This document shows, in pieces, positions 1 to 21,299 of a DNA stretch of 64,000 nt. The translations under genes were made by a program, and so were the position numbers. Position 1 is the stretch's first letter. Each line of letters opens with the position of its first letter. The stretch covers positions 11,718,001 through 11,782,000 of the forward strand of contig NC_045729.1 in assembly GCF_009834535.1 (NCBI RefSeq), given 5' to 3'. This DNA comes from Camelus ferus (lineage: Eukaryota). The notes under the pieces are model-generated. The model had not been told where the DNA came from. It saw only the letters and a list, made by a program, of their open reading frames with translations, and did not search any database.

Positions 1-459
1 TTTATTCTGGAATCAAGGCTGTTTATCCTCAGATGCAGGTGGACTGTAATATTTCAATAAGAGAAAACGTCTCTCTGTCCTGGAGCCCTCGCACTCATGT
101 ACCCAGCTGTGAGTGTGCTAGTGGTTTTCGGAACGATCTACCATGATTCTCAAGTCTCTTCCTTAGATTATAACTGAGGCTTCATCTTCATCTAATTAAA
201 TTTAATAGTGTGGCACAGTCACAGTATTTTTTGTAAAAAAAAAAAAAAGTGTTTTTCATACTTTTCCTCTCCATTCTAAGGATGGAGACAGCAAAGCTTT
301 TCCAAGTGACTCATCTGAGGTACTTCAGATGATGCGAATAGTTAAACATTCTTGGCAGGTAACATGGACCTCGGGTAGAGAGGTACCGTACCTGTTCTGT
401 ACTAGTAATTGCAATTTTTTGTGAAATTCCTCGGAATTATTTAACCCACAGTATGTTGG

Positions 460-472
460 TGCTGAGTCAGCA
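460..472. promoter_or_regulatory. Perfect T-MARE (Maf recognition element) TGCTGAGTCAGCA
   Basis: Exact 13-bp consensus match; function unproven. Confidence 0.5.
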
Positions 473-578
473 TATTAGAAGTGAAAAGGTTTTCTTGGTT
501 TGAGAGTGAAAATTGAACTTCCTTCATAAATTGGTTTTGGTGCAGAAATGATGTCTTTATTTTCTTGTGTGATGACAG

Positions 579-722
579 ATCCTGGATGACAGGAAGCAAT
601 GGTGGAAAGTTCGAAATGCAAGTGGGGACTCTGGATTTGTGCCAAATAACATTTTGGATATCGTGAGACCTCCAGAATCTGGCTTGGGGCGTGCTGATCC
701 ACCTTACACACATACCATCCAG
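579..722 (+). CDS. EPS8: EPS8 coding exon, C-terminal half of SH3 domain plus linker (ILDDRKQWWKVRNASGDSGFVPNNILD...PYTHTIQ)
   Basis: Acceptor gacag|ATC at 578/579; donor CAG|gtaatt at 722/723; 144 nt, phase 0-0; SH3 signature WWKV...GFVPNN matches EPS8 as recalled. Upstream exons lie before the window. Confidence 0.97.
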
Positions 723-1845
723 GTAATTGTGATTTCTGAGCAGAACCTAACTTTTACAGATTTTTCAAATTCTTCACGCCTAAGCAAGACTTAACTACCT
801 TATATGTCTTAGTCATTTTGAGACTTAATTGGTTATGTATAATTTTTTTCTAGGGTAATTGGAGGGCAGTGGCTAGAGACATAGGGGAGAATTATACATA
901 TGTTTTCTGATTTACTTCTTCAGGAAATTGCTCGAAATGTTTACCACTCAGTGACTGTTTCTCTGAATGCTGTTTTTGTTTCTACCCCATAATATTTCTG
1001 CCATTTGGAGAAAGAGTGTTTCTGCCTCTTCACTCTTCCCAGAGCCCTGCTAGCCAAGGGTCCTGATGGAAGCCAACACCGAGACAGAGGATGGAGTGCC
1101 TGCAGTTGTCTGCACCTGCCTTTGCCCCCATTCTTTTTATAGACTTTGATTGGTAACCTGTTTGCTTGCAACTTTCCAACTATCAAATCTTAACCCCTTT
1201 TTAGAAACTACCTTAACATGACAGAACTTCCATCCAGTTTTCAGCGCCATTATCTTCCTTCAGGCGTGGTGACCCCATGAGACTAGGGCGGCCGCCGTGT
1301 GCTTTTTGACCTGTGACAGGATCTCTAGAGTCAGATCTGCCAGTGGAGACAGAATGGATGGACGGGCCCATGCATCGCCTCTGAACCTGTGTTGGCTACT
1401 TTCTTATGCCCCCAGGAAAATTCTTTTCATTTTCAGAGGCTTGAGCCAAGGATCACATCTGACCCCGTAATAATGTCATAAATGGGTAGAAGCTGAAGCT
1501 GCATAGAACATGCAGTGACAGAGTCAGATCTCATGCCTCAGCTCAGTAAAATACCAACTGTCCAAACCTAGAATTGTGGCCATGTGCTGTCATGACCATT
1601 CATGTAAGTACCTCTGTCCCCCTGGCATTCGAGCCTAGTGCAGTCCTGCACTTAACTGAGGGACTTTGGGCCTTATTAGAATCCAAGAATCAAGCAAACA
1701 TTTCAAATAAAGAATTGCTGTACAGTTTATATATCTTGATAACTTACAGTGATGGCAGTGGGAACTGTTTGCTGTGCTGGCTTTTTGGCTGGCTTGATGT
1801 GCACAGATATTCTCTACTTACTTTATGTTCATCATTTGTCACTAG

Positions 1846-1881
1846 CTGTTGATGCCAAAGAAGGAGTTTGAGTTATTCAAG
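1846..1881 (+). CDS. EPS8: Candidate EPS8 36-nt in-frame cassette exon (LLMPKKEFELFK)
   Basis: Pyrimidine tract ttctctacttactttatgttcatcatttgtcactag, donor AAG|gtacgg, phase 0-0 like the host intron, no stop. Prediction only, no transcript evidence. Confidence 0.65.
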
Positions 1882-2795
1882 GTACGGTCTGCTCCATTTC
1901 CCATGGATTTTTGCAGTGAATTTTCTAACTTAATTTTAACACCTCTTTCTTTCCTAAGTTCTTACATTTCTTATCTTGTGATGTGCTTACCTGACGTAAT
2001 ACAGGCTTCTGTCTGGTTTATAAATGCCAGGCCTTTGTGTTCTTTTCTAGAGAAGTTTTGACTGAATGCCTTAGGGAGCATTAAAGAATGTTGGCTTGAA
2101 ACTATGCATGAAACAGTGGTAGAATATGTCCCCTTTGAGCTCTGTGGGCTGTTTTTAATGTTTAACTCATGATAAGCAATAAGAAAGATGTTCACAAAGG
2201 ACCTCACCAGTGGCCGTGTGTGAGCAGAAGCCCAGAGTTCATATATAAAGTGTTACAAACACTTAGCCAAGTTTGTTTTTATTATAGGAATGGGCAAACT
2301 CCGATAAAATAAGATACCTAAAACTTGCAAATACTAATGTACATCCTAAGTATTTCCCGCCACCTGAGATTTCCTCAGGAGTTTGACCTCTTTTACCTTT
2401 TCCTGTTTACTGTTCAGTCTTGTCTTTTTCCTCAGTTTGGATTCTTGGCTTGGGCCATAAGTTGACTTTTCTGTTCAAAGGTTGCTTCTGTCTAAAACGG
2501 AACCCAAACTATTAATATATATCATATTTAGAGTACTTTTTGAGAACATAAAACCTACTTCTCCTTTCTTGAACAGAGCCTTGGTTTATATTTTTGTCAA
2601 CTTTGGCAAAACCAAGAAATTTTTTAAGTGTTCCCAAGTTTCAGGAGTTTGTTTTGCTGCTTTGTGTAAATAGAAACTTGTGGGGATTGCCTGTTTGGGC
2701 TGTTTCCTTTTAAACTTTTCAACACTATCTGACTGTCTGAAATTTTTTGGATGCAGCTCTGAATGCAGTGATGTACATAGAAATGCGTATAGAAG

Positions 2796-2796
<1 letters not shown>

Positions 2797-2840
<44 letters not shown>
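2797..2840. repeat. (TG)22 perfect microsatellite
   Basis: 44 nt of uninterrupted TG. Confidence 0.97.
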
Positions 2841-2843
<3 letters not shown>

Positions 2844-3654
2844 AGGTTGAAAGTCCTACTTTTAAAAGGAATTAAAAGCCATCTAGTTTTCAACACCTCC
2901 TGAAAAATTTGGGCTGAGCCCAACAAAACCACCAAAACCTTGTAAAGTTTTAATAAGCAAGCTTGACAATCTGCTATCTGGCATAAATATAACTCTGAAA
3001 GGATTGCTATTCTCAAAGCATTTATAACACAACAGAGAAAAATGACTAGAGAGAGTGAGATGGAAAAGAAAAACAACCTCAGAGATACATACCAGTTATT
3101 TTGTATCTCTGCAGCCATGTTACCAGACACTTTTATCTAAAATATCCAAAGAAAAGCCCTGCAGCTTATATCAGAATGGCAATAAAATGCCACTACATTT
3201 CCATAGGTTGCTATGGTCCTGACACCCTAGACACGCAGAACTGTGCTGGATTACAAACACACCAAAAGCAATCCTGTGTCCTACCCCTCTTCTCATTCCT
3301 TCCTCCACAAATGTATTGAGTGCCAGCATCTTGCGTTCGATGAAAAGAAAGACAGAAATCCGAGCACTGAGCAGATCCTCTATTAAACCCGCCACCCAGA
3401 ATCAAACCTCCGTGCCGCCCCGGCTTTGCCCCTCCCCTCTGAGCTTGTGCATCAGGAGCGGGGACCCCCCTCCTTCTTCAGAAATGGCCCACGCTTTCCC
3501 CCTGTCTCATCCATCCAATGATACCAAAATTTTACAGAAGTTTAAAGACACTTCTTACAAAAACATCTTAGAACCCTTGTACTGCCCTGCAGAAAGACGC
3601 TCCGGCTGAGTGCCGGGTTGTTCAAGGACTCCACAAATACTGGTCCACTGAATT

Positions 3655-3790
3655 CCCACGACAGCCCTGTGAAATAGGCACAGTTTACATATGTGGAAAT
3701 TTAGGCACAGAGAGCTGACTTGCCCACGGTTGCACAGCCTCATGAAGCCAGGGTGGGGACCCAGGACTCTGGAATCAGAACCCATGCTCT
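3655..3790 (-). mobile_element. MIR SINE fragment
   Basis: Core-like tttacatatgtggaaatttaggcacagagag...acttgcccacggttgcacagc. Confidence 0.75.
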
Positions 3791-4999
3791 GATATGTCCC
3801 GAGGAACAGTGCTTACCCTTACGTCTCGTTGAGGGTAAGGATATAGTTTTTCACTGTATGAGTGCTTAAAGTGACACCTTCCCGGAGTAGGTTTACCGTG
3901 CATTGTGCTGTGTTGATCTGATCAGTCACCATCCTTGGAACTGGATTTTTGCTTTATGCATCCATCCTTGGATTTCATTCATTCTTTCACTTTTTAACTC
4001 ATTCGGGAAAGTAATCCAACTTATGTAATTCACTTAGAAAGCAGACATTTTTTTGAATGGTGGGAATAAGGGAATTAGATGTAAATTATTTCCATGTGGC
4101 ATCTACAGGTCACCAGAGGTTTTAAAAATGCACGGAAGTAGGACTGTTATTTTCACGCACTTATCTTTCCTGTGAAGAAGTATGTATGGATAAGAGCAGT
4201 CCCTAGGTGAGGGCAAGGGCTGCCTTGCCTGTGGCTCACACATTTTTGGTTAGAGATTCTCTTCGGACGCCAGGGACGCACATACCTGGCACCAGTCACG
4301 GCTAGGTGTTGAATTGCCACCCAATGTCCCTGTGAGTCCAAGCTATTTAATAACCTCACATTTGGAGTGATTTTTAACAGCTCTGTAAAGACAGCCAGTC
4401 CCACCGAATGTGTTTCCCCACCATGGCTTCAGCAAAGTTCTAAAAATAAAGGACAGGGAGGTAATAAAGAATTTAGGAAAGATGTGGAACATTAAAAAGA
4501 AGATTGGACGAGACCACAGGGACAAGGAAGTGAATGTTTATGAGAGATTATGGAGAAATGACGATAAATGACATACATGCCTTTTGATGAAAGTTCTGTT
4601 GTAGAGCATTCCAGGGCTTTGCGGTCCTTGAGCTGGACAGCGAATGGGCATCCCGGGTGCCTTCCCCCCACCTGGAAGCCACTGGCCACATCACATTTCC
4701 TGATACTTCTTTTGACTCAACTCCTGACCTCCAGCACTTTGACTGTTCATCTACCAGAATCACTTTCATGCTCTATGCCAAGAGTCAAAACCAGCCTCTG
4801 CCATTCTGTTATTTCCAATATCCTAAGAGGCTTGGCTAAAGAACTCTTTTATTTATTATTAATTACCGAGTCTCTGTGCTCATCATTATTGCAGATATTC
4901 TTACTCTACCAAGATGCAAATAATTTGGAATGTCTGGTCACTGTGGTCCTGTAAATGCAACAGGAAGTCTCCCGTCTGCTCTAGTCTCCTAGCAAGAGA

Positions 5000-5140
5000 T
5001 GTTATACTGTGGAAACAGCCCCAGTCTAGGTACTGGGAGGTGAGGGTTCTAGTCCTGGCTCTGGCACTGACTAGCTGCATGACTTTAAAGAAAGCACCTT
5101 ATTTTTCTGAGCTCCGGTTGCTGAGCTGTGAGATGGAAGG
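5000..5140 (+). mobile_element. MIR/MIR3 SINE fragment
   Basis: gggttctagtcctggctctggcactgactagctgcatgacttt...tttctgagctccggtt resembles the MIR consensus. Confidence 0.75.
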
Positions 5141-5313
5141 GGCCAGGGGGTTTCACGATCTCCACAGTCCAGTCTAGACATAAAATTTTGTTACTTTTTA
5201 TTATACGTGTTTAAGTAGCCCTGAATTAACTGTGGCCATGTTTCCTGCAGGGGAATACTAAACCGCTAGCCCTACTAATTTCAGCTCCTGTTATGAATGC
5301 TCTGTTTTTCAAG

Positions 5314-5331
5314 CTTAATCCAGATATTCAG
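5314..5331 (+). CDS. EPS8: Candidate EPS8 18-nt microexon (LNPDIQ)
   Basis: TACTAAT branch-like site at 5273-5279; aaTGCtctgtttttcaag acceptor; weak CAG|gtactg donor; phase 0-0. Confidence 0.4.
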
Positions 5332-6087
5332 GTACTGCTGGGCAGAGAGTGACCGTGTTACTAAAGATGTTTGTATACTCATTCCAGCAGACCAACTTCC
5401 TGATACGATTGAATTGTTAAACAAATTTTTAAAGTTTATCTCAGAACACTCTATCTGTCTATTAATTAGAGGCATGGTTTCTAGACAGGGGTGGTTACTT
5501 TTTTATTCTGCTTCATGTGTTGACATTTTTCCAAATATTTTTTACAATAATTTGAATAATACCACCCTCCTTTCATATATATATATATATAAAACTGCCC
5601 GATATGCGTATGTACAGAATTGTAGAATTTTCTGTTTACCTGCTTACAAGTTCAACTGAAGCTCACTAAAACACACTGATATATATTAATTTCCTTTTGT
5701 AAATCAGATTATTAAGAGAATTAGCCTGACATTTAATGTACTTGTATTCCTTATAAGCTGTAAAAATAGGATGAACCTTTATCTTAATATTTTTAAAACA
5801 ATACCCTGGCACACAAATAGTTACTGAAATACTCGACCCAGTTTATACTGCAGTGAGAGTCTATACAGCTAGTTTCCCTTGACTAGATAGCGGTGGAAAT
5901 TAATTATATATTTACAGGCGCCTTCCCTGGTGGATTTGCTTGATTTGTGGGCAGGTAATTTTACTGTCAGAAATGAATTTGCTCATGTTTTCTGATATTT
6001 GATGTGAAGTATAATTGGTATTCTTTTCGTTCCGTCCCCTATGTTCGATGTTCTCATTTGACGTGATTTGCTGCATTTTCCTAATAG

Positions 6088-6111
6088 CAATTACTTGGCG
6101 AGCTGTCAGAG
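6088..6111 (+). CDS. EPS8: Candidate EPS8 24-nt microexon (QLLGELSE)
   Basis: Long upstream pyrimidine tract; ttTGCTGCattttcctaatag acceptor; GAG|gtaacc donor; phase 0-0, no stop. Confidence 0.62.
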
Positions 6112-6607
6112 GTAACCCACATTTGTTCCCTCAAGGCACTTTCTTTTTAATGGACTTTTTTTGGATTCAGTCTCTGGACTTAACACCCTCCAAATGTTCC
6201 AGCTGTGCCTAGTTTTCACTGCAGAATTCCAAAGAGACTAAATTTAGAGGAAAAAAAAAATGTGTAGGTTACATTTTTAAGAACAGTTCGTTGTTACGGC
6301 TTTGTGTTGCTTGCTTGCATAATTTCCCCTCTGAAGCAGTACCTGCGTGAACCAGGGGTTTATCTCTAGATCACCATCCTTAATCCTGGAGAGTTTCTAT
6401 CAGCTTTACTAGCTAAAGCAACATGACTCATTTGGATTTAATTATCAACAGAAAAATGTATTTTCCATGGGGGCTAGTGATTCTGACTTCTTTCAGGGAA
6501 AGAGAAAAAAACAGATTTTGTTTTAAGCAAAACTTTAAATATATTTGTGGGTGATAAAAGGCAAGAGTTAGGAAGTGACAGTGATGGTACGAAAGTAGGG
6601 CCACACC

Positions 6608-6708
6608 AAGGTGACCAGTCGTCCCAGTTTGTTCACGACTGAGAGGTTTGTAGGAACATGGGCTGAAACTGGGAGAGTCCCAGGCAGACTGGGAACAGTT
6701 GGTCAAGA
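6608..6708. mobile_element. MER81-like hAT-Blackjack MITE
   Basis: Terminal inverted repeats ggtgaccagtcgtcccagtttg ... cagactgggaacagttggtca. Confidence 0.65.
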
Positions 6709-7666
6709 TTTCTTTTTGGATTTGGCAATTCAGCACCCTTGGTTCAGGAGATGAAAAGTTCAGGGTAGAGTTCTGCTCTCCAAGACTTCCCAAAGTTCGA
6801 GGCGTCGCCGGCTCCCTGCCTCCAACCAGAAATAACCAGGAGGCAGTGGTGCTGAAGGGAAGAGCAGTGCTTGGGTGGTGAGTAAAAGGGAGTGGAGGAG
6901 ACGGGGAGGGACAGAGAAAAGTGACTCCAAGAGTCAACACTGATTCTGTTTCCTTCACTCAGAGGATGACTCATTAGTTTCCACAGAAAAGCTACCTTGG
7001 TTTCCGTGTCAGAACAGGTCGTAATGATTTGAGGAAGGTACATCCCGCCTTTTCATTCCAGGGGTTGGAAGCATGAGGCAGGAAGGAGGATCAAGAACAG
7101 GGGAAAATATGCAAGTAAATAAAATTCATGACATAATTCATGAAAAATGTTCATAAGGTTTCTCTTTATATTATATATATATATACATACACACATTATA
7201 AGTCTATTCTGATAGGTTAAACTGATAAAGTTGCATTATATGGCAAGGACAGATGACTGAAATGAGGCACAGAAGGCTTGGTGAGCCTGTCTGCAGGCTT
7301 GATAGTGACAGTAACACAGGTATTCAGTTTTCCACAGTATTTTTTGACCGATAGCAAAACACGAGCTGTTCTTGTTTTTCTGAAAGCAAAAAACATGAAT
7401 TGTATCATGGAATGCAGAGCTGACAGCACTTGTTTGTTGAAGCTTTAAAAGCAATCATTTAAACTGACACGTTTGAAATCCGAATGCGAGAATACACTAA
7501 CCCTTCGTGAAATTACGTACGGAAGACATCTTTGTCGAGGGAATCTTGCAGTATACATTAAGCAGATGACTTTGGTGTGTGCTAAGTATCGCATTGTGGT
7601 GATGTTTGCTGTATTTTGATTGCTTGAAATATTTTATTGGCCCAAATATAGGAACATTGTTTTGTG

Positions 7667-7700
7667 GATGATGATGATGGTAATAATAATAATAATAATG
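7667..7700. repeat. Compound (GAT)n/(TAA)n trinucleotide repeat
   Basis: gatgatgatgatggtaataataataataataatg. Confidence 0.9.
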
Positions 7701-9340
7701 TGATAATGAACTCCATTACTGAATATATTAGAAGCGTTCCTAGGCCTTGAGTGCTGAGAGAATCAGCAGTGTCTGTTTCTCTCCCATCCAACTCCGTGGT
7801 TTCCTCTATACATTTCACCCCCACTTCTCCCCTTCCTCCTGGCCTCTCTCCACCTCCCTTCCATCCCCCTCCAAGAAACAGGAGCATTATAAAGGCTTCT
7901 TTCTCCTCTTCTCCCATCCTCGTTTCATGCCCTGCCCACCTTCTCCACCCCGTTGGCTGGTGAGAGGTAGCTTTTAAAGAGACAGCAGAGAGCCAGGGCT
8001 GCGCCCCACGCTGGTTTCCACAGGTGTTACTCATTTGCTCTGAGGGTGCCTGTGACGGTTGTGTGTTGTTTTTTTTAAATCATAATTTAAAAAGTGATGT
8101 GTGTGGTGTTTTATGTTTTTGATCTCTGTGGAAATTGGGGGGGGGGCCTCTTTTAAAATCAGTATTACCTTATATTTGGGCCAATTTAAAAATTAAAAGT
8201 AAATCCTGTTCTCACCAAAGGACCAGATTACCAAAAGGCCTGCTTTTTGTGTTTCATCTGTTAACCCTGAATTTTAGAATAATTAAAATTGTGACAGGAC
8301 AGTATCTAAACTGTACCTAAATTATAAGTCAGTGCTCTGTGTCTTTGATTCTGTCCTTAAAAAATGCCTTTTGAGAATTTGGAACTTAACTCCGATTGTT
8401 ATCTATTAGAATTATTTTGTTGAAAGTTTTAACTATTGTATGCCGTTTAATGGGGAATATCCACAAATACTGTTTTATAATAGCCATGATTTTAAAATTG
8501 CTGAAAGTTTTTATATATTCTATCACATCCACCTTTTTTGAGTACAAATCTCCACATGGAATTTTCTAAGTACATGCTCTGAGATGTAGTCATCAACATT
8601 TAATTAACGACCATCCCATTACCCTCACCACAATCCCGTTTTAATAAGGCAAGTGTCTAAACTTAATAAATTAATATTAAGATGATGGCAGAAAGGGTTA
8701 TTACTTGGAAAAATAAACAGTGTTTTAAAGTTACTTTATTTTAAAGCACAGTTCTTTTATCTACTGAAATATTGTGCCTCTTCTTAACAAATTACTTGAA
8801 AACAGTATAAACACTCTTGAATATAACATACATTTACAATAAGGAGTGAGTAATGCTATGTGTTATTGATATTTAGACTTCCAAGGCAATTAGAAGTTGT
8901 TATTAATGGAAATTATAAAATAATCAGAAATCCTTTGACTTAGCCTGATCTTGTGTGATTCCAGGTTCAAATTTAGTTTTTTTGACATTTATTACTGTTA
9001 TTAATACTGCTATTTGCTTTTGGTGTATCCTTTTGACTCCTTAATTTACATTTGGATTTTGAACATATATGTAGAGCATTTAAAATATAATTTTTAATAA
9101 CTATTATATCATGTAGGATGGGGGGGTTGTGTATTTTTTGTATATGACACATATACATATGTGGGTACAGATGTGGGTACATGGGGGTTAGTGTATGTGT
9201 ATAAATATGCACACTTGCCATGGATTTGCAAGTGAGTTTTACACATAAATAGCCAACAATGTCCCATCAAAATATAATTTGTTTTCCTAGCCTAGGTTTA
9301 CATTTTTACAACTTCAAATTAATTATTTGTCTTTTTATAG

Positions 9341-9563
9341 AAACAAAGGATGGAATATGGTCCAAGACCAACTGACATCCCCTCTGCTCCGTCACCTCCT
9401 CCAACACCAGCCCCCGTCCCGGTCCCCCTTCCACCCTCTGCTCCAGCACCCGTTCCTGTGTCAAAGGTCCCGGCAAACGTTATCCGTCAGAACAGCAGCT
9501 CCAGTGACAGTGGTGGCAGTATCGTGCGAGACAGCCAGAGACAAAAACAAATTCCTGTGGACC
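9341..9563 (+). CDS. EPS8: EPS8 coding exon, proline-rich region (KQRMEYGPRP...PSPPPTPAPVPVPLPPS...QIPVD)
   Basis: ctttttatag|AAA acceptor; GAC C|gtaagt donor; 223 nt, phase 0-1; translation matches EPS8. Confidence 0.97.
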
Positions 9564-9804
9564 GTAAGTTTCCCAGGGAGGCAAAAAATAGACAGTTTCT
9601 TCTGGGAAATTAAAGCACTGCTAAGTAAAACTTGTTCATTGTTGGTTCTGCTGGTAGTAAATATCATTGAGTATAAATAATAGTCCTTTGCACAGGTGCT
9701 TCATAGATGGCAAAGACTTTGACCTAGTTTCTCATCCTCCAAGTAATTCTGAGAAACTGGGAGTTCTCTCTGCTCTCTAATATGTGCATTTCTACACGTC
9801 TTCC

Positions 9805-10270
9805 AATACATTGTGGTGGTTGAATGCAAACTCTGGAGCCAGACACACTTGAGTTTGTGCAGTAAAACATCACCTGCTGGCGGTGAGACCTTCCACAATT
9901 TAATAATCCTCTCTATACTTTAATATCTGTAAAGTGGGGAATAATGATAGCAACTTCATAGGATAATTGTGAGGATTTAATGAAATAATGCAGGTAAATG
10001 ACTTAGATCAGTTGTTCTCAGCCAAGGGTGATTTTACCCCTTCCCCTGGGGACAGCTGGTATTTGTCTGGAGACATACTTTGATCACAGTTGGATGGATG
10101 CTACTGACATCTGAAATAGGTAGACGTTAGGGATGTAATTCACAACATCCTAAGATGACCGGGACGGCTCCTCCCTCCCCCTGCACAGCAGGGTTATCTG
10201 GCTCAAAATGTCAGTGGTACTGATTGATTTTAACTAATATGACACATTATAAGCAGGTAGTAAATAGTTA
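9805..10270 (+). mobile_element. MIR interrupted by a MER20 insertion
   Basis: MIR body at 9805-10008 (atctgtaaagtgggg...gtgaggatttaatga); degraded tail resumes near 10235-10270. Confidence 0.7.
10009..10228 (+). mobile_element. MER20 (hAT-Charlie MITE)
   Basis: cagttgttctcagccaagggtgattttacccc...ggggacagctgg...gtctggagaca...gctcaaaatgtca matches MER20 as recalled; 3' TIR degraded. Confidence 0.85.
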
Positions 10271-10729
10271 CATATATATACATACAATCACACTAGCTTA
10301 GGATAATCAACCTGCCAATAGCAGTTTCAAGTTTGCCCTCCAGATTCAGATTTTATGTGATTTACACTTTAACTTCATATGTTCATAAGTTTAAATTTTA
10401 TTTTTCATAAGAGTGGTTACTATGAAAACCAGATTTAAGGAAACTAAAAGAAAAGACACTACAGGCCAGCTTTGGATTACCCTTGTTAGTACTGGGGAAC
10501 AGCAGTGTAGAGAATTTGAATGTTGAAGGTAATTCTGAGATAATTTTTATTTTGTTTTTCCTTATCGTATCTGTCTTATCTGCTTAATCTTCAAATCATG
10601 GTTTTTAAAGTATTATAAAATTACTTTGCTTTATCTAGGCTTGATATATAAAAATTCTTGGAAAACTAGAGCCAGAAAGATATTTTCTCAATATGATAAG
10701 AGTATATAAAGTGTGTGTGTGTGTGTTAA

Positions 10730-11070
10730 GGGTATCTTTCATACTGTCCAGTGGCCTCTCCCAGGGCTCAGTGCTGGGTTCTTTTCTCATGCAAACATAC
10801 TTTTACTGTAAGTGATCATATTTTAATTTCTTTCAATACTGTCTATGCTGTTGGAAAAGGCATATCTCCCAAATTTGTCTTCATAGTAAATCTCATCTCT
10901 GACATCCAGATACATGCAATGAACTAGTACCTTTATAGCTGAGATTGTATGCTGGAAATTCAAGTTCAAAATCGAATCATTGAATCTTGCACTCCCATTT
11001 TTTTACCGTACTGTTTTTCTCATCTCAGTAAATCATAGCCCCACCTATTGAGTTTTGGTCATTCTTGATA
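10730..11070 (+). mobile_element. L2 LINE fragment
   Basis: cccagggctcagtgctgggttcttttctc...aaatctcatctctgacatccaga, typical of the L2 3' region. Confidence 0.6.
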
Positions 11071-13149
11071 CATTAAAAATTGTTCAAAAAGAAGACTCAG
11101 AAACTCTTAGTATTTAATTGTTCTAGAAAATCGAGTTAAATGCACTAGGCATAAACCTGCTTTTATACGTTACTTTCTCAACTGAGGGTATAGCCAGTTT
11201 AAATCACCGACTTACCCATTTCCTGACCTTACCAAAGAACTAATGGAGAAACGAAAGCTTTGGAAAAATGATTAACTCTTTTTGTGCAGCAAAAACAACT
11301 ATGCCTGTGTGTGTGTGTGCGTGTGTGTATAAATATAACTTGCTACTAAATTTTTAAATATTTTTGTGTATTTTTTTAAAAGCTGCTTTTTTTTTTGCTT
11401 TTTTTTTTTCCAGACACTAAAGGCATAGTTTTGAGATGAGAAAAAGCTCTATAAATGTTTTTATTGATTTCCCTCAGGAAACTTTTCCTCTCAGAAACGA
11501 CTGTTCTTTCCTCCTTTTTACCACAAGTTTATAACATCCCCCGCCTTGGATACTTCAGCACAGTCCTCTTTGACACCAGGGCACTCTTTTTCCAGGCCTC
11601 GGGTCGGAGTTCATAGGCATCTAGCCTTAATTTTGCAACAGGCCGTGGGCTGGGACACTTTGTTCTTTGTCCGAGACTAAGAAACTAAGAATAGCCTAAT
11701 GGGAAAGAGGCAGGGTTGGAACACTTTAAAGACAGAGAACTCTCCGGATAATTGTGATTCATCATTTTCAAGTCTGTTTTTCATAAGTGAAAGGGTGACA
11801 CTGGAATGTAATACATAAACATCTCTCCCAAAATTAACACATGAATTGTTTCCTTAAAATAATAAAAAGTTTGCATTTACTCACACAACGTTTCTTTTCA
11901 AGATCGCTCAAAAGTATAGTTTGGCATTAAATAAAGGTAGTTCTTTTTTTACGACACAGATACTGTCTTGATAGGTTTTTCTTGAGTACCTCTTTGGAGA
12001 ATGTCTCCTCTAAGTGAATGTTTGGGTTTCTCAATAGTTCTTTTAGAACCAGGCACATTTATTTTATCAGCAGCCCGGTTTCTTTCAGAATATGCCCTTC
12101 ACTTTCCCTACATTCTCTGCTTATACCCTAGACTTCAGATAAGAATAAAATGGAAGGAGCTGTAAATTGAATTCTCACCCATAAAAATGTTACCCAATAG
12201 CTACGAACAAGGAAGGAAAGTTAACAGGCCTGTGTTTAAAGTGTAACAAGGACAAGAGCCCTGCTCCTTCTCTGAAGTGTGACCTGCAGACCAGCTGCTG
12301 GCAGCCCTGTGTCCTGTCAGCTATTCAGACTGACTTGGAGCAGGATTCACAAAGCTTCCCCTCTTACCACTTTTGAAGACGCCAGTGCTTTAGTAGTTCT
12401 GCATTTCTTCCATTTCCTTTGAAATGTTAGTCCTTTTATTTTGAGTTTAATCTTTTGGCATCAGGAGGGTTGTTTTAGAAAGACAAGTGTGAAGTTAGTC
12501 TGGTTTGTTCTGTGCTGGAACGCTGCACGTGGAAACCAAAGCCAGGAACACATTAGAAGAGATTTTTATGTTCCCTGGAAGGAGATTATTATGCTGTGCA
12601 TTAGAGAGGACCCTGCAGTAGCTAAGTCAGCAGATAAGAAAATTAATTTTTTAGTGTACTGATACTTTTTCTTTTTTATTTCTTTGAGATGTACTCCTAC
12701 GCTATAGGGAAGTATGGCTAAATCATAGTGATTTAAGAGTTAACCAATGAAAGGTGTACTGTGTATCATGTAAATGTAACAATCAGCAATGTTCCCTCTC
12801 ACCCTCTCTACCTCCGTGTCCTCTCTCCCGCCCTCCCTCCCTTCTCTTTCCACTTCTTTCCTCTTCAAAAGGTTTCCTGAATACTTGAGGCATAAAAAAA
12901 ATTAGACTGAAATAACACTGATTATTTCACACTTTCACTTATTTCTCAGGGGCCCCAAACACTTTCTAAAATGCTCTCCTTGGGGGAAAAAAATCAGAAA
13001 AATGGTCACAAAAGCTCCCTTAGTGACCAAGTCACTGTCACTTCCCAAGTTCAGTTAATTGTATTTTAATTGTATTACTGTATCAGTTCTTCAGTACTTA
13101 ATCCTTGCAGGTGATATACAAATTGTGTGTGTGTGTGTGTGTGTCTGTG

Positions 13150-14340
13150 TGTGTCTGACTCACATTCTAGAAGGGTCCCGCTAGCTGCTGTATTGAGAAA
13201 AGAATGAAGCGCAGTGGGTGGGGGTGTGCACAGTAGACACAGAGAGACCTGTGAACAGGCTGGTGGCTCAGACGAAGCCGATAACGGAAAAAATGGAGTG
13301 AAAAGATTGCATCTGTGGTACATTTTAATGGTGGGACCAATAGGATTCGCTGATGAATTGGATGTCATCGAGGGTAAGGGGGAATCAGGCATGGCTCCAT
13401 GGTGTTTTGCTGGAGGAACTAGGAAAATAGAGTTACTGGCTAAGTTGAGAACTCTAGCATAAAAGCCAGTCTTCAGGAAGAACATAAGCAGTTCAGATTT
13501 GGACGTGGTGTATCTGAGATACCTAACAGACATCCAAAGGAATAGATCAGGTAGACAGCTGGCACATCTGGATCTAGCGTTCTGAGGACCAGGCTGCACT
13601 GGAGAAGTGATTTGCATAGCCAGCAGTTTTTAAATGGCATTTAAAGCCGTGAGACCAGCACACACTGATCGTTGACGGGGTGAAGGCAGACAGGGAAGAG
13701 GTCCAAGGACGGTGCCCTGGGGAGCTGGGCAGACGAGAAGATTCTGAGAAAAGGGGACAGAGGAGAGGCCAGTGAGACAGGAGGAAAGTCAGGATGGCAT
13801 AGTGTCCAGAAGACCACAAGGAGAAAGTGTTTCAAGGAGGGACAGCTTCTTCAGATGTTGCCGATAGATTAAATGAGGAAATGACTGGGTGCAGACCACT
13901 AGAGTTGAGCAAATGGAGCGGAGGGGTAGGGCCAAATCTGCAATGAATTTAGGGGACAACTGGAGAACAGGAATTGGGATCTGCTAGTAGAGACAGCTTT
14001 TCATGGCGTTTTGCTAAAAGGGGAGTAGAGAAATGGGCAGTCGCTGGGAGGGGGTGAGGGGTTAAGACAGGGCTTATTTAAAGGTGAGAAAAATAACAAC
14101 AAAATAATAGCATGTTTGTATGCTGCTGAAATGGTTCAGTGAAAGAGGAGAACAGACAACAAGGGAGAAGGAGGGGGGCGATTACTGTCAAAGTATTTAA
14201 ATAGACAGAAGACATGGGGTCCAGTGCCCGTGGCGAGGGGTTGGCGTTGGGAGTGTGGAGACAGCTCATCTATAACGTAGTGGGAAGGCAGGCCAGCAGC
14301 GGGTGCAGGGGGACTCCTAGGGAACTGAGGGAGGTTCTCG
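13150..14340 (-). mobile_element. L2 LINE remnant (about 1.2 kb)
   Basis: Purine-rich strand with L2 hallmarks (ggattcgctgatgaattggatgt, gttcagatttggacgtgg...gagatacct, gtgtttcaaggaggg). Confidence 0.85.
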
Positions 14341-14483
14341 TCTAACCTCTCTATTTTACAGAAATTATGAAAGTGAGGTCACAGCTCAGGGTGGGCATGG
14401 AGGACTGGGTGTTTGTTAGAGGTCTGCAGAGGAAGAAGACAGGAAGCACTTGTCTAACAGTGCTCAAATTACATGGTCTGGGG

Positions 14484-14710
14484 CAGGACTTCTCAGACTG
14501 AGCCCTGTTGATGTTTGGAGCTGGGTAATTCTCTGTTGTAGGAGACTGACCCGTGTGCACTGCAGAATGCTTTTGCATCCCAGGCCCCTACCCACTACAC
14601 GATGGTAGCTTCCTTCCCCCCCTCTTCTCCTATTTGTGACATCCAAAAGTGTCTCTAGTCATTGCCTGATGTCCCTTGGGGTCAAAATTTCCCCCATTTG
14701 AAAACCACTG
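14484..14710 (-). mobile_element. MER20, near full length
   Basis: Both TIRs present (caggacttctca ... tgaaaaccactg); flanks gtctgggg/gcctgagg match 6/8 as a decayed TSD. Confidence 0.88.
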
Positions 14711-15089
14711 GCCTGAGGAAATGTAGTATGATTGTCAGGGAGTATTAACAGCCCAGGGGAGGTTTATAATCATGAATTTAACATGAGATCGCTCAGCATT
14801 GTTGTGTTATACTCGGTGTGCAGGTGCACACAAAGAATAAGCAGAAAGTTAGATTTACCAAGGGTTGGGGTTTTGCCAGATGAATACAATAAAGAGAGAG
14901 GAGAAGAGACAGGGAGTCATTTTAATAATTGATCATGGAATTTATACTTGGTGAAGGTGAAAGGTCGGGTGGCAGGAGTAACAGATTATAAGTTCTACTG
15001 GGGTCAAAGGACTCTTGGCATTGGGGTTCTGGAGAGAGTGACAGATATTAGGAGCTTTCAGAAATAACCTACTCTGCATCGGTGTCTAG

Positions 15090-15270
15090 GAAGGAAATCT
15101 CAGATGGAGGAGGTGCAGGACGAACTCATCCACAGACTGACCATTGGCCGGAGCGCCGCCCAGAAGAAGTTCCACGTGCCACGGCAGAACGTGCCGGTCG
15201 TCAATATCACTTACGACTCCACACCAGAGGACGTGAAGGCGTGGCTGCAGTCAAAGGGGTTCAGCCCCGT
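15090..15270 (+). CDS. EPS8: EPS8 coding exon, start of effector/actin-binding region (RKSQMEEVQDELIHRLTIGRS...WLQSKGFSPV)
   Basis: tctag|GA acceptor completes the CGA codon; GT|gtaagt donor; 181 nt, phase 1-2. Confidence 0.96.
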
Positions 15271-16231
15271 GTAAGTCTCCCCGGGGGAGCCTTTACGGTT
15301 CTGTTTTCAATTTGATCACCAAGAAGTCACAAATGACTCTTAAAAAATGTGAGAGCCCAAACTGCCTCTGTTTCCATGCTCAGGAAATGCCTATAGCTGT
15401 TTATAGCTAAAAAAGAATTGGAAGAAGCAGAAATAACCATAACCATCATTTGGCAGCACCCCATTTTCTAGAGGGCGGTGTCTGTTCACTGTTGGCCCCT
15501 TAGGCAATCTGTTGGCAGCTTTGAGGCCGGTGTCTGTCTTTCTCCCTCAGAAGGTCACACAGGGTAGGACCGTGGTCTTAGCTGGACTCCCCAGACCATG
15601 GGGGACCCAGAACCAAATCTTTCCTTCTGCTGCAGCCGATTAGATTATAGATTTCAGGCAAATAAGAAAATAGGTAACATTACCTATTATAAATTATAAT
15701 CTAATAGAACCTTTCCTTTAGTGAACCCATGGTGAAGTTTCTACTTATCTGTAACTAAAATTCTGTAAACGCTATGTGTATTTGGTACACATATTTGAAT
15801 ATGCGTATTTGAACTATTTGAATAATACATATTCAAGAGAACTTGACATATTATAAACTCAGTCACCCACCATGACTGAAAAATGAGGTACACTTGATCA
15901 GCTAATGGCCTGGTTACTAGAAAGTTCCTTCTACGAACACCAAATGTCAAGGAATCGGTACTGCACAACACGAATACTAAACCCAGTTGACTCTTTTTTG
16001 ATACTGCATCATCGATGACCTTATGTAGCCCCGGGGCCATCATCATGACAGTCCCTTGTCATTGCCCTAAGCACTGCAGTGCCATTTTCTGGGTTCCCGT
16101 GTATGGAACACCTAGAGAAGCGAGGTTGTATCAGGACTAGAAACTTTTCTCCTTTGTTTTTCCCAGACAGTATTTTTAATGCTCTATTTCCTTCTTTTCC
16201 TTTTTTTTTTTTTTTTTCCTTATTTTTTCAG

Positions 16232-16361
16232 AACTGTCAATAGTCTTGGAGTATTAAATGGTGCACAACTTTTCTCTCTCAACAAGGATGAACTGAGAAC
16301 AGTCTGCCCGGAAGGGGCCAGAGTCTTCAGCCAAATCACTGTACAGAAGGCTGCATTAGAG
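16232..16361 (+). CDS. EPS8: EPS8 coding exon, SAM/PNT-like part of effector region ([43 protein letters not shown])
   Basis: Long T-tract then ttcag|A acceptor; GAG|gtatgg donor; 130 nt, phase 2-0. Confidence 0.97.
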
Positions 16362-18101
16362 GTATGGCTTGTCCGCCTGAGGTGGTCTTGTCCTGTGTTA
16401 GTCAGGTTTGTGGTCTGCGACTTGAAGGCTCTGGAGACGATGTGTGTGTCCACGCTGGTCACTTTCTTTGCCTTCCATACAGAGCTGAATGAAACTTGAC
16501 TCTGTATTAGTGACTTGCCACTGGAGACCGTCAGGGCCCATTTTCAGGGAGATTAAGTTGTTAAAAATGCTCAAGTAACATGAAGCTTGAGCTTCATATA
16601 CTTTCAGACGTTTAATGAAAAGCCTAATGTTCTCATTTTATATGCATGAACTTCTTCTGTAGGAATTTTAGTTACTCATTCACTTGGAGTGGGTAAGTGA
16701 CTTAAGAAGTCAGAACTCTTTTGCGTGTCCTTAATGTTTAGTGTGGGGATTCTAGTAGGTTAGAGGTGATAGAGTCCTAAAACCATGGCTGTGTACCTCA
16801 GGCCTGGTTATACGTATAAATAATCGGAGGGGAAATATTAGAAAGGGGTCGCTGAAAAGAGGGAGCCCTGACGTGTAATATTCAGTTATAGCTGTTTCTC
16901 TGAAAGCCGGAGAGTAAATGTTTTCTAGATTGGATATACTTAAGGTTCCAGTATCCTACTCTGCTTAAAATGGGCTCTGTAAGGGTGGCGGTTCTAACTG
17001 TTACATCTCACAGCTCTTAATAGCTTTCATGAAAATTAAACTTGGTCTCCAATGAAAGCATATAGGCTTTGGCATGAAATCAATACATAATTATCTCTAG
17101 CAAGTATATTGTGTAAATGCAACAGTTAAATAGCTCAGTAGAGCAGCTTCCTGCATGCAGCCCCGTGACCATTCTCAGGCAGGAGAAATTATATTTTCCT
17201 TGGAAATTTTTCATACGACACTGGGCCTTGGTTGGTTCTGTATTCGGCTTTCTGTGTATTGAATGTGAATCAGGATTAGACCCTTTCTGAGGCACTTTTG
17301 TTACCATTACGCATTCTAATTGTATTGCGAATGTGTAAATTACTCCATCAGGGTCATGGTAGAAAGCTCCACATCCCTAACACGTCTGCATGCCTTCAGT
17401 CCAGACTCCCTGTCACTGTCACCTGCGCCCCGTGCCCGCTTCCTCCTGGTCTCTTGCTCTGGATGTGAGCTGAGGCAGAGACCGCCGACCTGAGGCTCTC
17501 TGTCCTCCCTGCCACCTTCCCACCACATTCTTCTCTCTCGCCCAGTTCACCTTTTAGGTGACTCACCTGGTTGCCAGAGACTTTCAGAGATGAGAGAGGA
17601 GCAAGGAGGGTGAAGAGGGTTGTAGGCAGGAGGCTTGGAAAGGAGAAAAGCCAACGTGACATCGGAGGGTCAGAACCCCGTGGTATGAGGAAACTTGGTG
17701 TCTTCTGAGCCCAGCCTCCGGGCCTGAGTTAGAATCCTCTAGAGGCAGATGCGTATCTTGCTTGACCTAAAGAGCATCCTCTGATAACTTAGCATCTTAT
17801 TATACAGTCTCTTCTTTCTCCCAGAGAGCGGAGAGCATTCCACGTGTGTTATTGATTTATCTTTAACATGCTCAAGCGAAAGGCCTGGTGAATGAATTGC
17901 CTTAAGACATTGTAAATGACAAATGATTCATGTGGTGTTAGTGAAGTCCAGAATCATCACTTACGTGAAGGCAGCCTTCTGTTTTCCCCAAGGGACCTTA
18001 GAAGAGAAACACCCAGGACTGTCAGCCCTGGCCATTTCATTACATGATTTGCAACCTCACAAACCAGTGACCACCTTGTCTGAACCTCGTTTGTGTTTTA
18101 G

Positions 18102-18215
18102 GATAACAGCGGCAGCTCTGAGTTGCAAGAAATCATGCGGAGACGACAGGAAAAAATCAGTGCTGCTGCGAGCGATTCAGGAGTGGAGTCTTTCGATGAG
18201 GGAAGCAGTCACTAA
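18102..18215 (+). CDS. EPS8: EPS8 last coding exon (DNSGSSELQEIMRRRQEKISAAASDSGVESFDEGSSH*)
   Basis: ttttag|GAT acceptor; TAA stop at 18213-18215; matches the EPS8 C-terminus. Confidence 0.97.
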   Translation, partial: DNSGSSELQEIMRRRQEKISAAASDSGVESFDEGSSH

Positions 18216-19166
18216 TTCGTCTTTAAACGCCATTATTCTTGGCATTATTCCAGCGTGCTTTGTTTTAAGAAGCCATGAAGGGAATGTCAGATTCTTATTT
18301 CTTGGTCTACGTGATTGATCGCCATAAAGAAGCAATGCAAACATAAGTAAGCAGAGTGCTTGCTTCCAGGCCCATTATTTTTATTAAAACTAAAAAAAAA
18401 TTTAAATAGCACTTTTTGACCTGGGGACCTGTTTTGCCTACACTTTACCAACGTGAGGTTTCCTTTACTGAATTAATTACTTCATCCCCATCTCAATGCT
18501 TAAGCAGACTTTTTTTTTTTTGACAGTGGTGAAATTTATTTATTGCAACAAAGCCAGAGATATTGCCCGTGATTCGAAATGTAGACAATTTCACTTTTGC
18601 CTGTGACTACGGTGTGTGTCATTCAGGGTGCAGCTAACTTGAGGCTAGCCTCTGCTTACTTAAGTCCCTCTCTCTCTCTTTTTTTTTTTTTTAACATACT
18701 CAATGATAGAATATTTAGATTTATTTAAAGTTCTTAATGCCAACAGTTTAAAGATGAAAACATTGAAGGAACTGTAAAATACAGCAAGGCCTTGGACATG
18801 CAAATAGAAACCTATGAAACATTCCCAAGACGGTTTATTTGTCATGGCTCTGTTGATCGTTTCTCCTTGTATGGCTTGTATTTTGATTTCATTTATATTC
18901 TGCTCATTACCTATACTGTGTTCTGATATATGAGAAAGCACAAGTGGAAAAGAGGTTATATACGTTGAAAATCGGTCACAGGAAGTAGCCTGCGTTGGTG
19001 TGTGTGACAGTATTTTGCTTAACGGAGGCCTCCGTTCTAAATATTGGTAATAAGTAGTAAAAGGACATTGGGGCCATCTTACGTGTTTATCTGTGTCAAG
19101 TTTTTCTGGTAATAAGAAACACTTAATTTACACATATTTTAATCCTGTGAAAGATTCTAGGTAGAG

Positions 19167-19300
19167 NNNNNNNNNNNNNNNNNNNNNNNNNNNNNNNNNN
19201 NNNNNNNNNNNNNNNNNNNNNNNNNNNNNNNNNNNNNNNNNNNNNNNNNNNNNNNNNNNNNNNNNNNNNNNNNNNNNNNNNNNNNNNNNNNNNNNNNNNN
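19167..19300. other. Assembly gap (134 N)
   Basis: Run of n between gtagag and gagatt. Confidence 0.99.
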
Positions 19301-19364
19301 GAGATTATCTAGACTCATTAATTTTCATAGTGCCTTTTTCACATGAGTCAGCCGAAAAGTCTGC

Positions 19365-19394
19365 AATAAACAGTATTTGCTATATGTTAATAAA
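19365..19394 (+). terminator. EPS8: Tandem canonical polyadenylation signals of EPS8
   Basis: AATAAA at 19365-19370 and 19389-19394, followed by the GU/U-rich stretch tggcttctgtttcattgg. Confidence 0.75.
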
Positions 19395-19579
19395 TGGCTT
19401 CTGTTTCATTGGCACAAGGGACCTTTGGCGTGGAGACTGGGGACCGGGGGTGAATGGAGTGCAAAAAACAGAGGCCTGCTCTTGTTTTTTTTAAACTGAT
19501 TTCCAGTAGAGTTCTGAGTGGGTAGAGACCAGTCTAGAATACTTTCTCCAGTTGTTTCTCTCTTTCCACCTCTCTCTCT

Positions 19580-19662
19580 TTTTAAAAAAAATTTTTTAAC
19601 CTTTTTTTAAACTTTCTTTATAATTGAAGTACAGTCAGTTTACAATGTTGTGTCAATTTCCG
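19580..19662 (-). mobile_element. Extremely 5'-truncated young L1 3' end with target-site duplication
   Basis: Reverse complement of gaaattgacacaacattgtaaactgactgtacttcaatta plus an A-rich tail; 13-bp direct repeat tttccacctctct at 19563-19575 and 19665-19677. Confidence 0.8.
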
Positions 19663-21299
19663 TTTTTCCACCTCTCTTATTTCATCATCTTTTTCTTCTA
19701 CCTTCTAGTCACAGTTGGTCCCAGCAGGAAAAACAAACTTTGTATAGCACTTGTGATCACTAAATGCTTCCACATAAGTACTTTGTTGGGCGTCTGCAGT
19801 GAGTCTGTGAGTTGTATTTTGTAGATGAGAAGACTTAGCTTCCTAGAGGCTAATCTTCCCCAAATGGTAAGGGATGTGGGAGCCTCTTGTTTTCAATTGC
19901 TCAGTCTCTCCATAACGTTGTCCCTCGGACAAAGCGAAGCAAACATGAGAACAGTAAAGAATTGTAGATCTTTCCCACTTCATAAGCACTGACACATGTT
20001 TATAACAGCCCTGATTGAAAATCTCTGCAAATGTAGGGATGAGACCAAAGATATTAAAAATGAAAAGTTAAAATATCTTGTGTGTAATGTAGCATATAAT
20101 GTACCATATCTGATATTAAAAGAATTGGTATCACTTATGTCTGTATGTTGTAAAATTCCAAAGGGAACTATCACAGAGGGAGTAATTGGAAGACGTAGGT
20201 ACCTCCCTCAGGGACGCAGGGACAAAGAGAAGGGTTGGGATCAATGGAATTTAAAAGCTTGAGGGAGAGGTACTGCAGAGTTTGGATGCAGACAGCTGAG
20301 GAGCTAGGTCACGGGATGAGATGTTTGGAGGAAAGGACCCACAACTGGCAAACAGACCTCGGAGAAGGGGGCCCAGCCTACCTGGTGCTGTGGCCTCAGG
20401 AATTCAGAAAAGAATTCAGCTGAGAAAATAGCTCAGCAAATCCATAGAGCCAAGACTCAGAGCTCCAAGGAGAGTATGCCAGCCAGCTGACCCTCGAGGA
20501 AACAAGGAGGCTGCTTCCAGGAGCGTGGGGGTCACTAGAACCCGCCGGGAATCGCCTGCTACTTAAAGAGTGAAGAACGATGATTAGGGTGATGTTGACA
20601 AGAAGCAAAACAGAAGGAAGCAAGTCCCTCGTTCCCCCTCTAGCTTCCTGTGTCCCTGTAAGCCCTTTTTGGACAGAGTCGATGGTCACCCACCTGGCAA
20701 AGCCCCAAATCACAAAGATGAGTCTAAAGGGGTAGATTTGAAATGGAGAAAACAGCTCAGTATAACCAACCCATTTCAACTCTGGCTACTTAGCTTCTAT
20801 ACGTCTTTGAAATTCCGTAAAACAAGCAAACAAAAGAAGTTTATGCTTTTACCGCAAAAGGTGCCATCATCCTTCTCTGTTATCTAAATGGTATTTAACA
20901 GAAGAAATTGGTTAAGCAAGGCAAAAAGAGAACACTGAGACTTCACAGAGGTGGTAAGAATAGGAAGCAGTCCCCACACCTTGAGCTCAGGCTGCAGGTG
21001 AAGAGGCTGGGTTTGTCAGCGTTTAGAAGCCGGGAGGAGGGCAGGGCCGTGGGAAGCGTGGGCACAGGCACTGTCTGATGTTGTGCTGATGCCCCAGGAG
21101 CGCAGGGCAGAGATCCCTGGCTGAGCTGGGACAGAGGCCCTTGAAGGGAGATTCTGGACAGTTTATGCTGGTGTCTGACGGGGCGCAGTGATGTTGGTTC
21201 TGGAAATGTAGGGGGAAAAACTAGAAACTAGAATTGCCTACTGGAATCAGTTCCTGCTGCCAAAGTGGAAGCCCCTTCGCAGGGTTAAGCCCTTGTTCA

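Follow-up and report, generated by a model that had tools for sequence, protein, structure and literature searches.

The question raised by the 3' part of EPS8 in a 64,000-nucleotide (nt) stretch of Camelus ferus DNA (contig NC_045729.1, positions 11,718,001 to 11,782,000; referred to here as the window) is whether the long intron that follows the SH3-encoding part of the gene holds short alternative exons, and what the residues that they add could do for the protein. EPS8 is an actin-capping and actin-bundling protein of stereocilia, microvilli and filopodia, whose loss leads to deafness. The intron (723-9340, forward strand, 8618 nt, phase 0) is flanked by a constitutive exon that encodes the end of the SH3 domain (579-722, forward strand; supported by translation, tblastn with a bat isoform and 48/48 identity to a representative protein) and by a constitutive proline-rich exon that begins KQRMEYGPRP... 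(9341-9563, forward strand, start phase 0 and end phase 1; supported by translation, splice sites and tblastn). A preliminary description of this DNA, made from the letters alone, had given the canonical protein as reading TIQ-KQRM at this point, and this agrees with the exon ends, since the SH3 exon closes on ..PPYTHTIQ in phase 0 at 722 and the next exon opens with KQRM at 9341. It had also placed three cassette microexons of 36, 18 and 24 nt in the intron, all of which read as claimed with respect to position, AG and GT boundaries, phase 0-0 and freedom from stops. Two of these, a 36-nt unit at 1846-1881 that encodes LLMPKKEFELFK and a 24-nt unit at 6088-6111 that encodes QLLGELSE, with an LLxEL core, both on the forward strand, are almost certainly real and alternative cassette exons, as judged from conserved splice sites, cross-species alignment and annotated isoforms. 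The 18-nt unit (LNPDIQ; 5314-5331, forward strand) is a chance unit and not a conserved exon.

The splice pattern itself contributes little to this result. Each of the three units lies between an AG and a GT, has a length divisible by three and contains no stop, but because the 8618-nt intron contains 177 such units of between 15 and 39 nt, the bare pattern is not above chance and carries little weight. On an approximate splice-site matrix, which provides a rough ranking only, the 36- and 24-nt units hold the first two ranks and the 18-nt unit rank 9 of the 177. The 36- and 24-nt units are placed far above chance by the comparative evidence, namely islands that can be aligned with owl and change that is exclusively synonymous. 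Orthologous loci were compared from rat (L002), a vespertilionid bat (L004), tuna (L005), burrowing owl (L006) and gray whale (L007), and in 5/5 of these the two units are exons in their own right, with lengths of exactly 36 and 24 nt, phase 0-0 and retained AG and GT. The 36-nt exon is identical at 36/36 positions in whale and bat, and differs at three positions in rat and two in owl, all synonymous; the 24-nt exon shows one synonymous change each in whale, bat and rat, and four in owl. With both exons considered together against bat, rat and owl, 11/11 changed codons are synonymous, while whale adds one further synonymous change. Only 20% of the possible single-base changes in the two exons would be synonymous, which gives a naive P of about 2e-8. 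Both exons are under extreme purifying selection.

Alignment of the intron as a whole singles out the same two sites. The most conserved 60-nt interval in a three-way alignment of the camelid, bat and rat introns (1831-1890) contains the 36-nt exon, and the 24-nt exon sits within a cluster of conserved intervals. Whole-intron BLAST against the 8.6-kilobase (kb) owl intron returned exactly two islands, at 1843-1900 and 6056-6116, and against the tuna intron the only genuine alignment was at 1844-1884; a dinucleotide microsatellite at 2791-2841, which matched a CA/GT repeat at the start of the tuna intron, was discarded as spurious. Exons that preserve the frame, with canonical AG and GT at orthologous sites, are present in camelid, whale, bat, rat, owl and tuna. 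Orthologues lacking AG or GT, or carrying stops or frameshifts, had been named in the preliminary description as grounds for giving up its proposal, and losses of this sort were found at the 18-nt unit and not at the 36- and 24-nt units. Microexons are defined strictly as exons of <=27 nt, and more widely as exons of up to about 51 nt, such that the 24-nt exon falls within the strict definition and the 36-nt exon within the wider one only.

Alternative use of the two exons was examined in annotated isoforms, all of which are gene models. A protein search with the SH3 exon against 1.84 billion representatives, three focused searches of a 5.8-billion-protein collection and a set of cluster look-ups yielded 425 proteins in all. 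The SH3-exon search identified a tuna Eps8a isoform (P0034) that reads ..HTIQ-LMMPKKEFELFK-QLLGELNE-KQ... Among the first 268 proteins, mostly fish isoforms, both inserts are present in 111, the 24-nt insert only in nine (most from tuna or other fish, plus a bird and a lungfish) and the 36-nt insert only in two (a fish and a partial frog model), with neither insert, or read-through into the intron, in 22. Tetrapods annotated with the 36-nt insert alone comprise marmoset, desman, two bats, gundi, dugong and razorbill, and the form with the 24-nt insert only, which reads IQQLLGEL, is annotated in panda, horse, marmoset, a bat, a gecko, a bird, a lungfish and tunas. Annotated isoforms of one species, Phyllostomus discolor, cover all four states (both, 36 only, 24 only and neither), and gene models of fish, bat and marmoset include examples of inclusion as well as of skipping. 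Between the SH3 and proline-rich exons, EPS8 has a pair of ancient microexons, each of which can be skipped independently of the other. From the modular in-frame array originally proposed, the 36/24-nt pair is retained, with every combination annotated, and the 18-nt exon is lost, and the three-exon array with it.

The suggestion that these exons might already be annotated proved correct; both are in public gene models of many species, and their existence is therefore not new. No functional study of them was found in literature searches whose coverage misses most subscription journals. The insert peptide strings gave no match in the literature searched, an EPS8 entry is absent from the microexon papers and supplements searched, and literature pairing EPS8 with microexon, SRRM4, splice variants or cassette exons contained nothing on these exons. 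Two peculiarities of the gene models deserve mention. In nine fish isoforms (P0185, P0186, P0232, P0240 and five others) an extra Q is present between the inserts (..ELFK-Q-QLLGEL..), which may reflect use of a tandem acceptor that precedes the 24-nt exon by 3 nt. In Pogoniulus pusillus isoform X6 (P0012) and in a Thomomys protein (P0386) the 24-nt exon is followed by read-through of the intron to an early stop (..QLLGELSE-VTTLLF*); this form, an EPS8 without its proline-rich and actin-binding parts, may be either a genuine truncated isoform or an artefact of gene modelling.

The joint product of the two exons, the 20 residues LLMPKKEFELFKQLLGELSE, is identical in four sharks, a skate, a bichir, a sturgeon, owl, bat and the window, with a single conservative change in frogs and two changes in teleosts. 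When 35 insert-containing sequences, from sharks to mammals, were aligned and identity to the bat sequence was measured, the mean was 0.92 for the insert, 0.86 for the known capping helix, 0.76 for the C-terminal domain, 0.75 for the SH3 core and 0.41-0.47 for the flanking linkers. The level of constraint on the insert therefore points to a specific and important interface. Inclusion of both exons would add these residues to a fast-evolving, disordered linker, within which 16 of them, KKEFELFKQLLGELSE, would form an amphipathic helix. AlphaFold2, supplied with the 35-sequence alignment, predicted one helix over this stretch, at residues 89-104 of the modelled part; the confidence score (pLDDT, predicted local distance difference test) for successive 10-residue blocks is 59, 78 and 58, and the linker on either side is below 50 in places, such that the helix is placed, by AlphaFold2 prediction only, in an unstructured and exposed region. 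The hydrophobic moment of the helix is 0.49, a value reached by 2.5% of shuffles, and F, L, F, L, L and L are arranged on one face. It seems likely, on the strength of the model, that the insert does form an amphipathic helix, and to this extent the helix anticipated in the preliminary description for the 36+24 form, with hydrophobic residues on one face, is borne out.

The resemblance of the helix to LD motifs was examined next to the published description of that family. The class I consensus, LDxLLxxL, requires L at 0 followed, at +1, by an acidic residue that makes an ionic contact, whereas an inverse class has the acidic residue at +6, before L at +7, and two of its members have been confirmed by nuclear magnetic resonance on the FAT domain of FAK (PMC7703752). 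One of the two is CCDC158, with the core DLKQLLQELR, which binds FAT site 1/4; LPP, with the core SLTSILADLE, is likewise assigned to the inverse class (Alam et al. 2019, PMC7703752). The core of the 36+24 form of EPS8 is FKQLLGEL and that of the 24-only form is IQQLLGEL. With F at 0 and K at +1, the former departs from class I, and the likeness to LDxLLxxL first proposed fails at just these positions; the insert falls instead within the inverse class (class II), since its positions 0, +3, +4 and +7 are hydrophobic and L at +7 is preceded by an acidic +6, with F or I at 0 deviating from the usual L. The EPS8 stretch LFKQLLGELS is identical to the CCDC158 core at K-Q-L-L-x-E-L. The inverse pattern is found in the 36+24 and 24-only forms but in neither the 36-only nor the canonical form; 2% of shuffled versions of the insert contain it, and 69 kb of SH3-protein sequence has a single occurrence outside EPS8. 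It had also been claimed that the core would form whichever exon came first, and this holds for FKQLLGEL and for IQQLLGEL from the constitutive exon, both annotated, but not for the route through the 18-nt unit.

Comparison with the known members defines how far the likeness extends. As in CCDC158 and LPP, the EPS8 motif would be an amphipathic helix in a disordered region with the same hydrophobic positions and acidic +6; EPS8 differs in having F at 0 and G at +5, in that its motif is confined to splice isoforms and is encoded across an exon-exon junction, and in that binding, confirmed for CCDC158, is proposed for EPS8. Paxillin-type class I motifs share with it the leucine spacing, helical amphipathicity and a setting among adhesion and actin scaffolds, but EPS8 has F-K in place of L0-D+1, so that the charge is reversed where the ionic contact is made. 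EPS8 occurs 0 times in the LD proteome paper, in which DLC1 was analysed by its UniProt canonical sequence (PMC7703752); if the proteome scan relied on canonical sequences as well, it would have passed over the EPS8 insert. The strength of conservation of the helix and its close fit to a FAT-binding motif class that was defined by experiment seem to be unexplored.

On balance, the insert is slightly more likely than not to be a partner-docking motif, that is, a helix that splicing could switch in or out to engage another protein. Its best specific reading is as an inverse-class LD-type motif, represented by the insert peptide EFELFKQLLGELSEKQ, with LD-binding domains, the FAT domain of FAK among them, as prospective partners; EPS8 is reported to bind the FAT region of FAK directly (PMC4265741), which speaks for such a partner. 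In such a scheme the 24-nt exon would carry the LLxEL core and, included alone, would still yield IQQLLGEL, presumably a weaker motif; the 36-nt exon would supply the F at position 0 together with an N-terminal extension of the helix, thereby tuning the motif, and would give no motif by itself. The narrower claim that docking is of the LD/FAT type is possible but doubtful, and slightly more doubtful again is the full proposal, in which the two microexons, joined by alternative splicing, would build an inverse-class LD motif across their junction and so direct EPS8 to LD-binding domains, with the FAT domains of FAK or PYK2, GIT, parvin and vinculin as candidate partners. The docking function, the LD/FAT partner and any tissue specificity, including the switch in neurons, stereocilia or muscle put forward in the preliminary description, are inferences, as distinct from the exons, their alternative use in gene models, the purifying selection and the predicted helix, which are shown by the analysis.

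A number of observations weigh against docking, and against an LD/FAT partner in particular. Identity of the insert over >400 million years exceeds the conservation typical of low-affinity linear motifs, and may point to a more demanding interface. The pLDDT of the helix is only moderate, and no PDB chain was matched when the 20-mer was searched with phmmer. Position 0 is F rather than L, G at +5 is unusual within a helix, and the likeness to CCDC158 was noticed post hoc, in a comparison with a few dozen known motifs. Neither exon is present in the camelid RefSeq isoforms of the cluster examined, which would fit tissue-restricted use, or simply thin RNA data. Finally, recombinant EPS8 binds directly to residues 981-1053 of FAK, within the FAT domain (Schoenherr et al. 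2014, PMC4265741), and this contact was observed with commercial recombinant EPS8 and with 1-821 constructs (PMC4265741). Since the 1-821 constructs, which presumably lack the insert, already bind, the insert is not required for the EPS8-FAT contact.

The main rival to docking is that the insert acts within EPS8 itself, as a regulatory helix that changes autoinhibition or as a second amphipathic, actin-contacting helix, in place of recruiting a separate partner. Such a role is rather unlikely, despite several features that are consistent with it. Autoinhibition of EPS8 is relieved through the SH3 ligand Abi1 (PMC4265741), and the insert occupies the linker that joins the SH3 domain to the effector region. 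An amphipathic helix already known from further downstream is also recovered in the model, at residues 183-200 of the modelled part, with a similar character, and conservation above that of the folded domains would fit a tightly packed interface. However, confidence in the helix is moderate, the predicted template modelling score (pTM) is low, at 0.34, and nothing in the prediction suggests a confidently docked arrangement; the insert has no established sequence similarity to WH2 or capping helices, and the EPS8L2 paralogues that were fetched have no comparable segment.

Hydrophobic residues spaced x2/x3/x2 characterise one published class of nuclear export signal. By inspection, F8, F11, L15 and L18 of the insert fit this spacing, and the helix could on that basis be a leucine-rich signal for CRM1 that makes the isoform more strictly cytoplasmic; moreover, LD motifs and export signals overlap and interconvert (PMC7703752). 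This reading is nevertheless very unlikely, given that the spacing is generic for amphipathic leucine-rich helices, and that EPS8 is described as cytoplasmic and actin-associated, such that the need for an export signal is not evident.

Less probable still is a three-exon array in which the 18-nt unit is a genuine, recently evolved exon of the lineage to which the window belongs. The unit does have AG, GT and an open frame in the window, but whale, bat and rat have AT in place of its donor GT, indicating that the GT is derived in the window's lineage, and at the acceptor bat has CG and rat has AA instead of AG. Its identity across species is no higher than that of the neighbouring intron, and its rank of 9 on the splice-site matrix is accompanied by a poor A at -3. 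LNPDIQ occurs in 1/425 proteins, a dromedary genome-project model of 880 amino acids (KAB1254443.1, P0404), where it ends a predicted 81-nt exon at 5251-5331, GNTKPLALLISAPVMNALFFKLNPDIQ, with its acceptor upstream at 5251 and the identical donor at 5331. That exon contains in-frame stops in whale and bat, and the model has several other odd insertions, typical of ab initio over-prediction, which is probably what the exon represents. The camelid RefSeq isoforms examined are without LNPDIQ, and across the 127 isoforms that have both real exons nothing is found between them apart from the extra Q in nine fish. The 18-nt exon of the preliminary description is consequently unsupported. As to the idea that the 36- and 24-nt units are themselves chance AG..GT units or functionless splicing noise, the abundance of comparable units in the intron is its one attraction, and it is refuted by shark-mammal identity, synonymous-only change, their standing as the sole owl-alignable islands and annotation in dozens of species, and deserves practically no credence.

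Candidate control elements were sought in and around the two exons. The 36-nt exon contains a purine-rich run, AAGAAGGAG, the central 14 bases of which, ATGCCAAAGAAGGA, are invariant from tuna to camelid with synonymous positions included, and which would fit an exonic enhancer. Upstream of the 24-nt exon, the 32 nt of intron flank that hold the pyrimidine tract and 3' splice site region (6056-6087, forward strand, part of the camelid-owl island at 6056-6116) are conserved from mammals to owl. In the neural microexon programme driven by SRRM3/4, a UGC is expected close to the 3' splice site. A UGC at -19 of this exon is kept in the four mammals (camelid, whale, bat and rat), is UAC in owl and is absent in tuna; there is no conserved UGC at the 36-nt exon. 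Neither exon has a GCAUG (Rbfox) conserved in bat and rat within 300 nt, and almost none of the Nova, MBNL and PTB-type motifs counted is conserved, so that regulation by Rbfox, MBNL or Nova through the flanks is not endorsed. An Rfam scan of positions 1-20000 of the window gave no match.

Several further conserved blocks were noted within the intron. About 130 nt upstream of the 24-nt exon, at 5944-5966, is a block resembling a 5' splice site (TTGTGGGCAG/GTAATTTT) that is invariant in camelid, bat and rat, has no conserved acceptor and does not align with owl; it could be a decoy donor or a splicing control element. A 37-nt exon at 5918-5954 that would end at its conserved GGCAG/GTAAT was rejected on account of an unconserved acceptor and an internal stop. 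The block can pair over 9 base pairs with the start of the 24-nt exon, but a change in rat breaks a pair of this stem and no covariation is seen. A block of ~45 nt (TCTGGACTTAACACCCTCCAAATGTTCCAGCTGTG..) at 6170-6215, 60-100 nt downstream of the 24-nt exon, is near-invariant in camelid, bat and rat and may be an intronic splicing element. Islands at 2586-2719, 4359-4418, 7592-7651 and 8086-8223 are likewise conserved in these three species, with mean identities of 0.83-0.88 per 60-nt interval, and are not alignable with owl.

The two exons invite comparison with known systems of isoform diversity. In common with the deeply conserved vertebrate microexons of neuronal and endocrine programmes, for example the DAAM1 microexon (PMC12056172), they are very short, in-frame, alternative and vertebrate-wide, they encode part of a disordered linker beside a modular domain of an actin regulator, and conserved intron flanks them. 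They differ from neural and endocrine microexons in that the UGC is conserved only in mammals and no GCAUG conserved in bat and rat is present within 300 nt, in that the 36-nt exon is above the strict 27-nt limit, and in that two adjacent microexons would jointly build one motif. The EPS8 isoforms p97 and p68 provide a precedent for isoform diversity in this protein, but are separated by a large difference in size that may arise by splicing or by proteolysis (PMC4265741), as opposed to inserts of 8, 12 or 20 residues, which would not be resolved on gels of the p68/p97 type.

The 3' part of EPS8 extends over 579-18215 on the forward strand and encodes the C-terminal 263 residues in five constitutive exons, the last three of which are at 15090-15270, 16232-16361 and 18102-18215, all on the forward strand, with the stop codon in the last; the product differs by one residue from isoform X1 of Camelus dromedarius (XP_031299906.1). 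A run of 134 N is present at 19167-19300, ~1 kb 3' of the stop codon. Many mammalian models named isoform X1 (P0271, P0278, P0282, P0292, P0321 and others) have 837-841 amino acids and neither microexon, and therefore point to at least one further alternative segment of EPS8 upstream of the window.

Work on EPS8 appears to use a form of roughly 821-822 residues. The insert described here is better conserved than the domains of EPS8 themselves, and motif scans limited to canonical isoforms can miss motifs that are built by microexons. The match to the CCDC158 core, considered together with the reported direct contact between EPS8 and FAK, provides a concrete and cheaply testable hypothesis, which, if true, would mean that splicing decides whether the EPS8 actin capper and bundler is wired to adhesion-type scaffolds.

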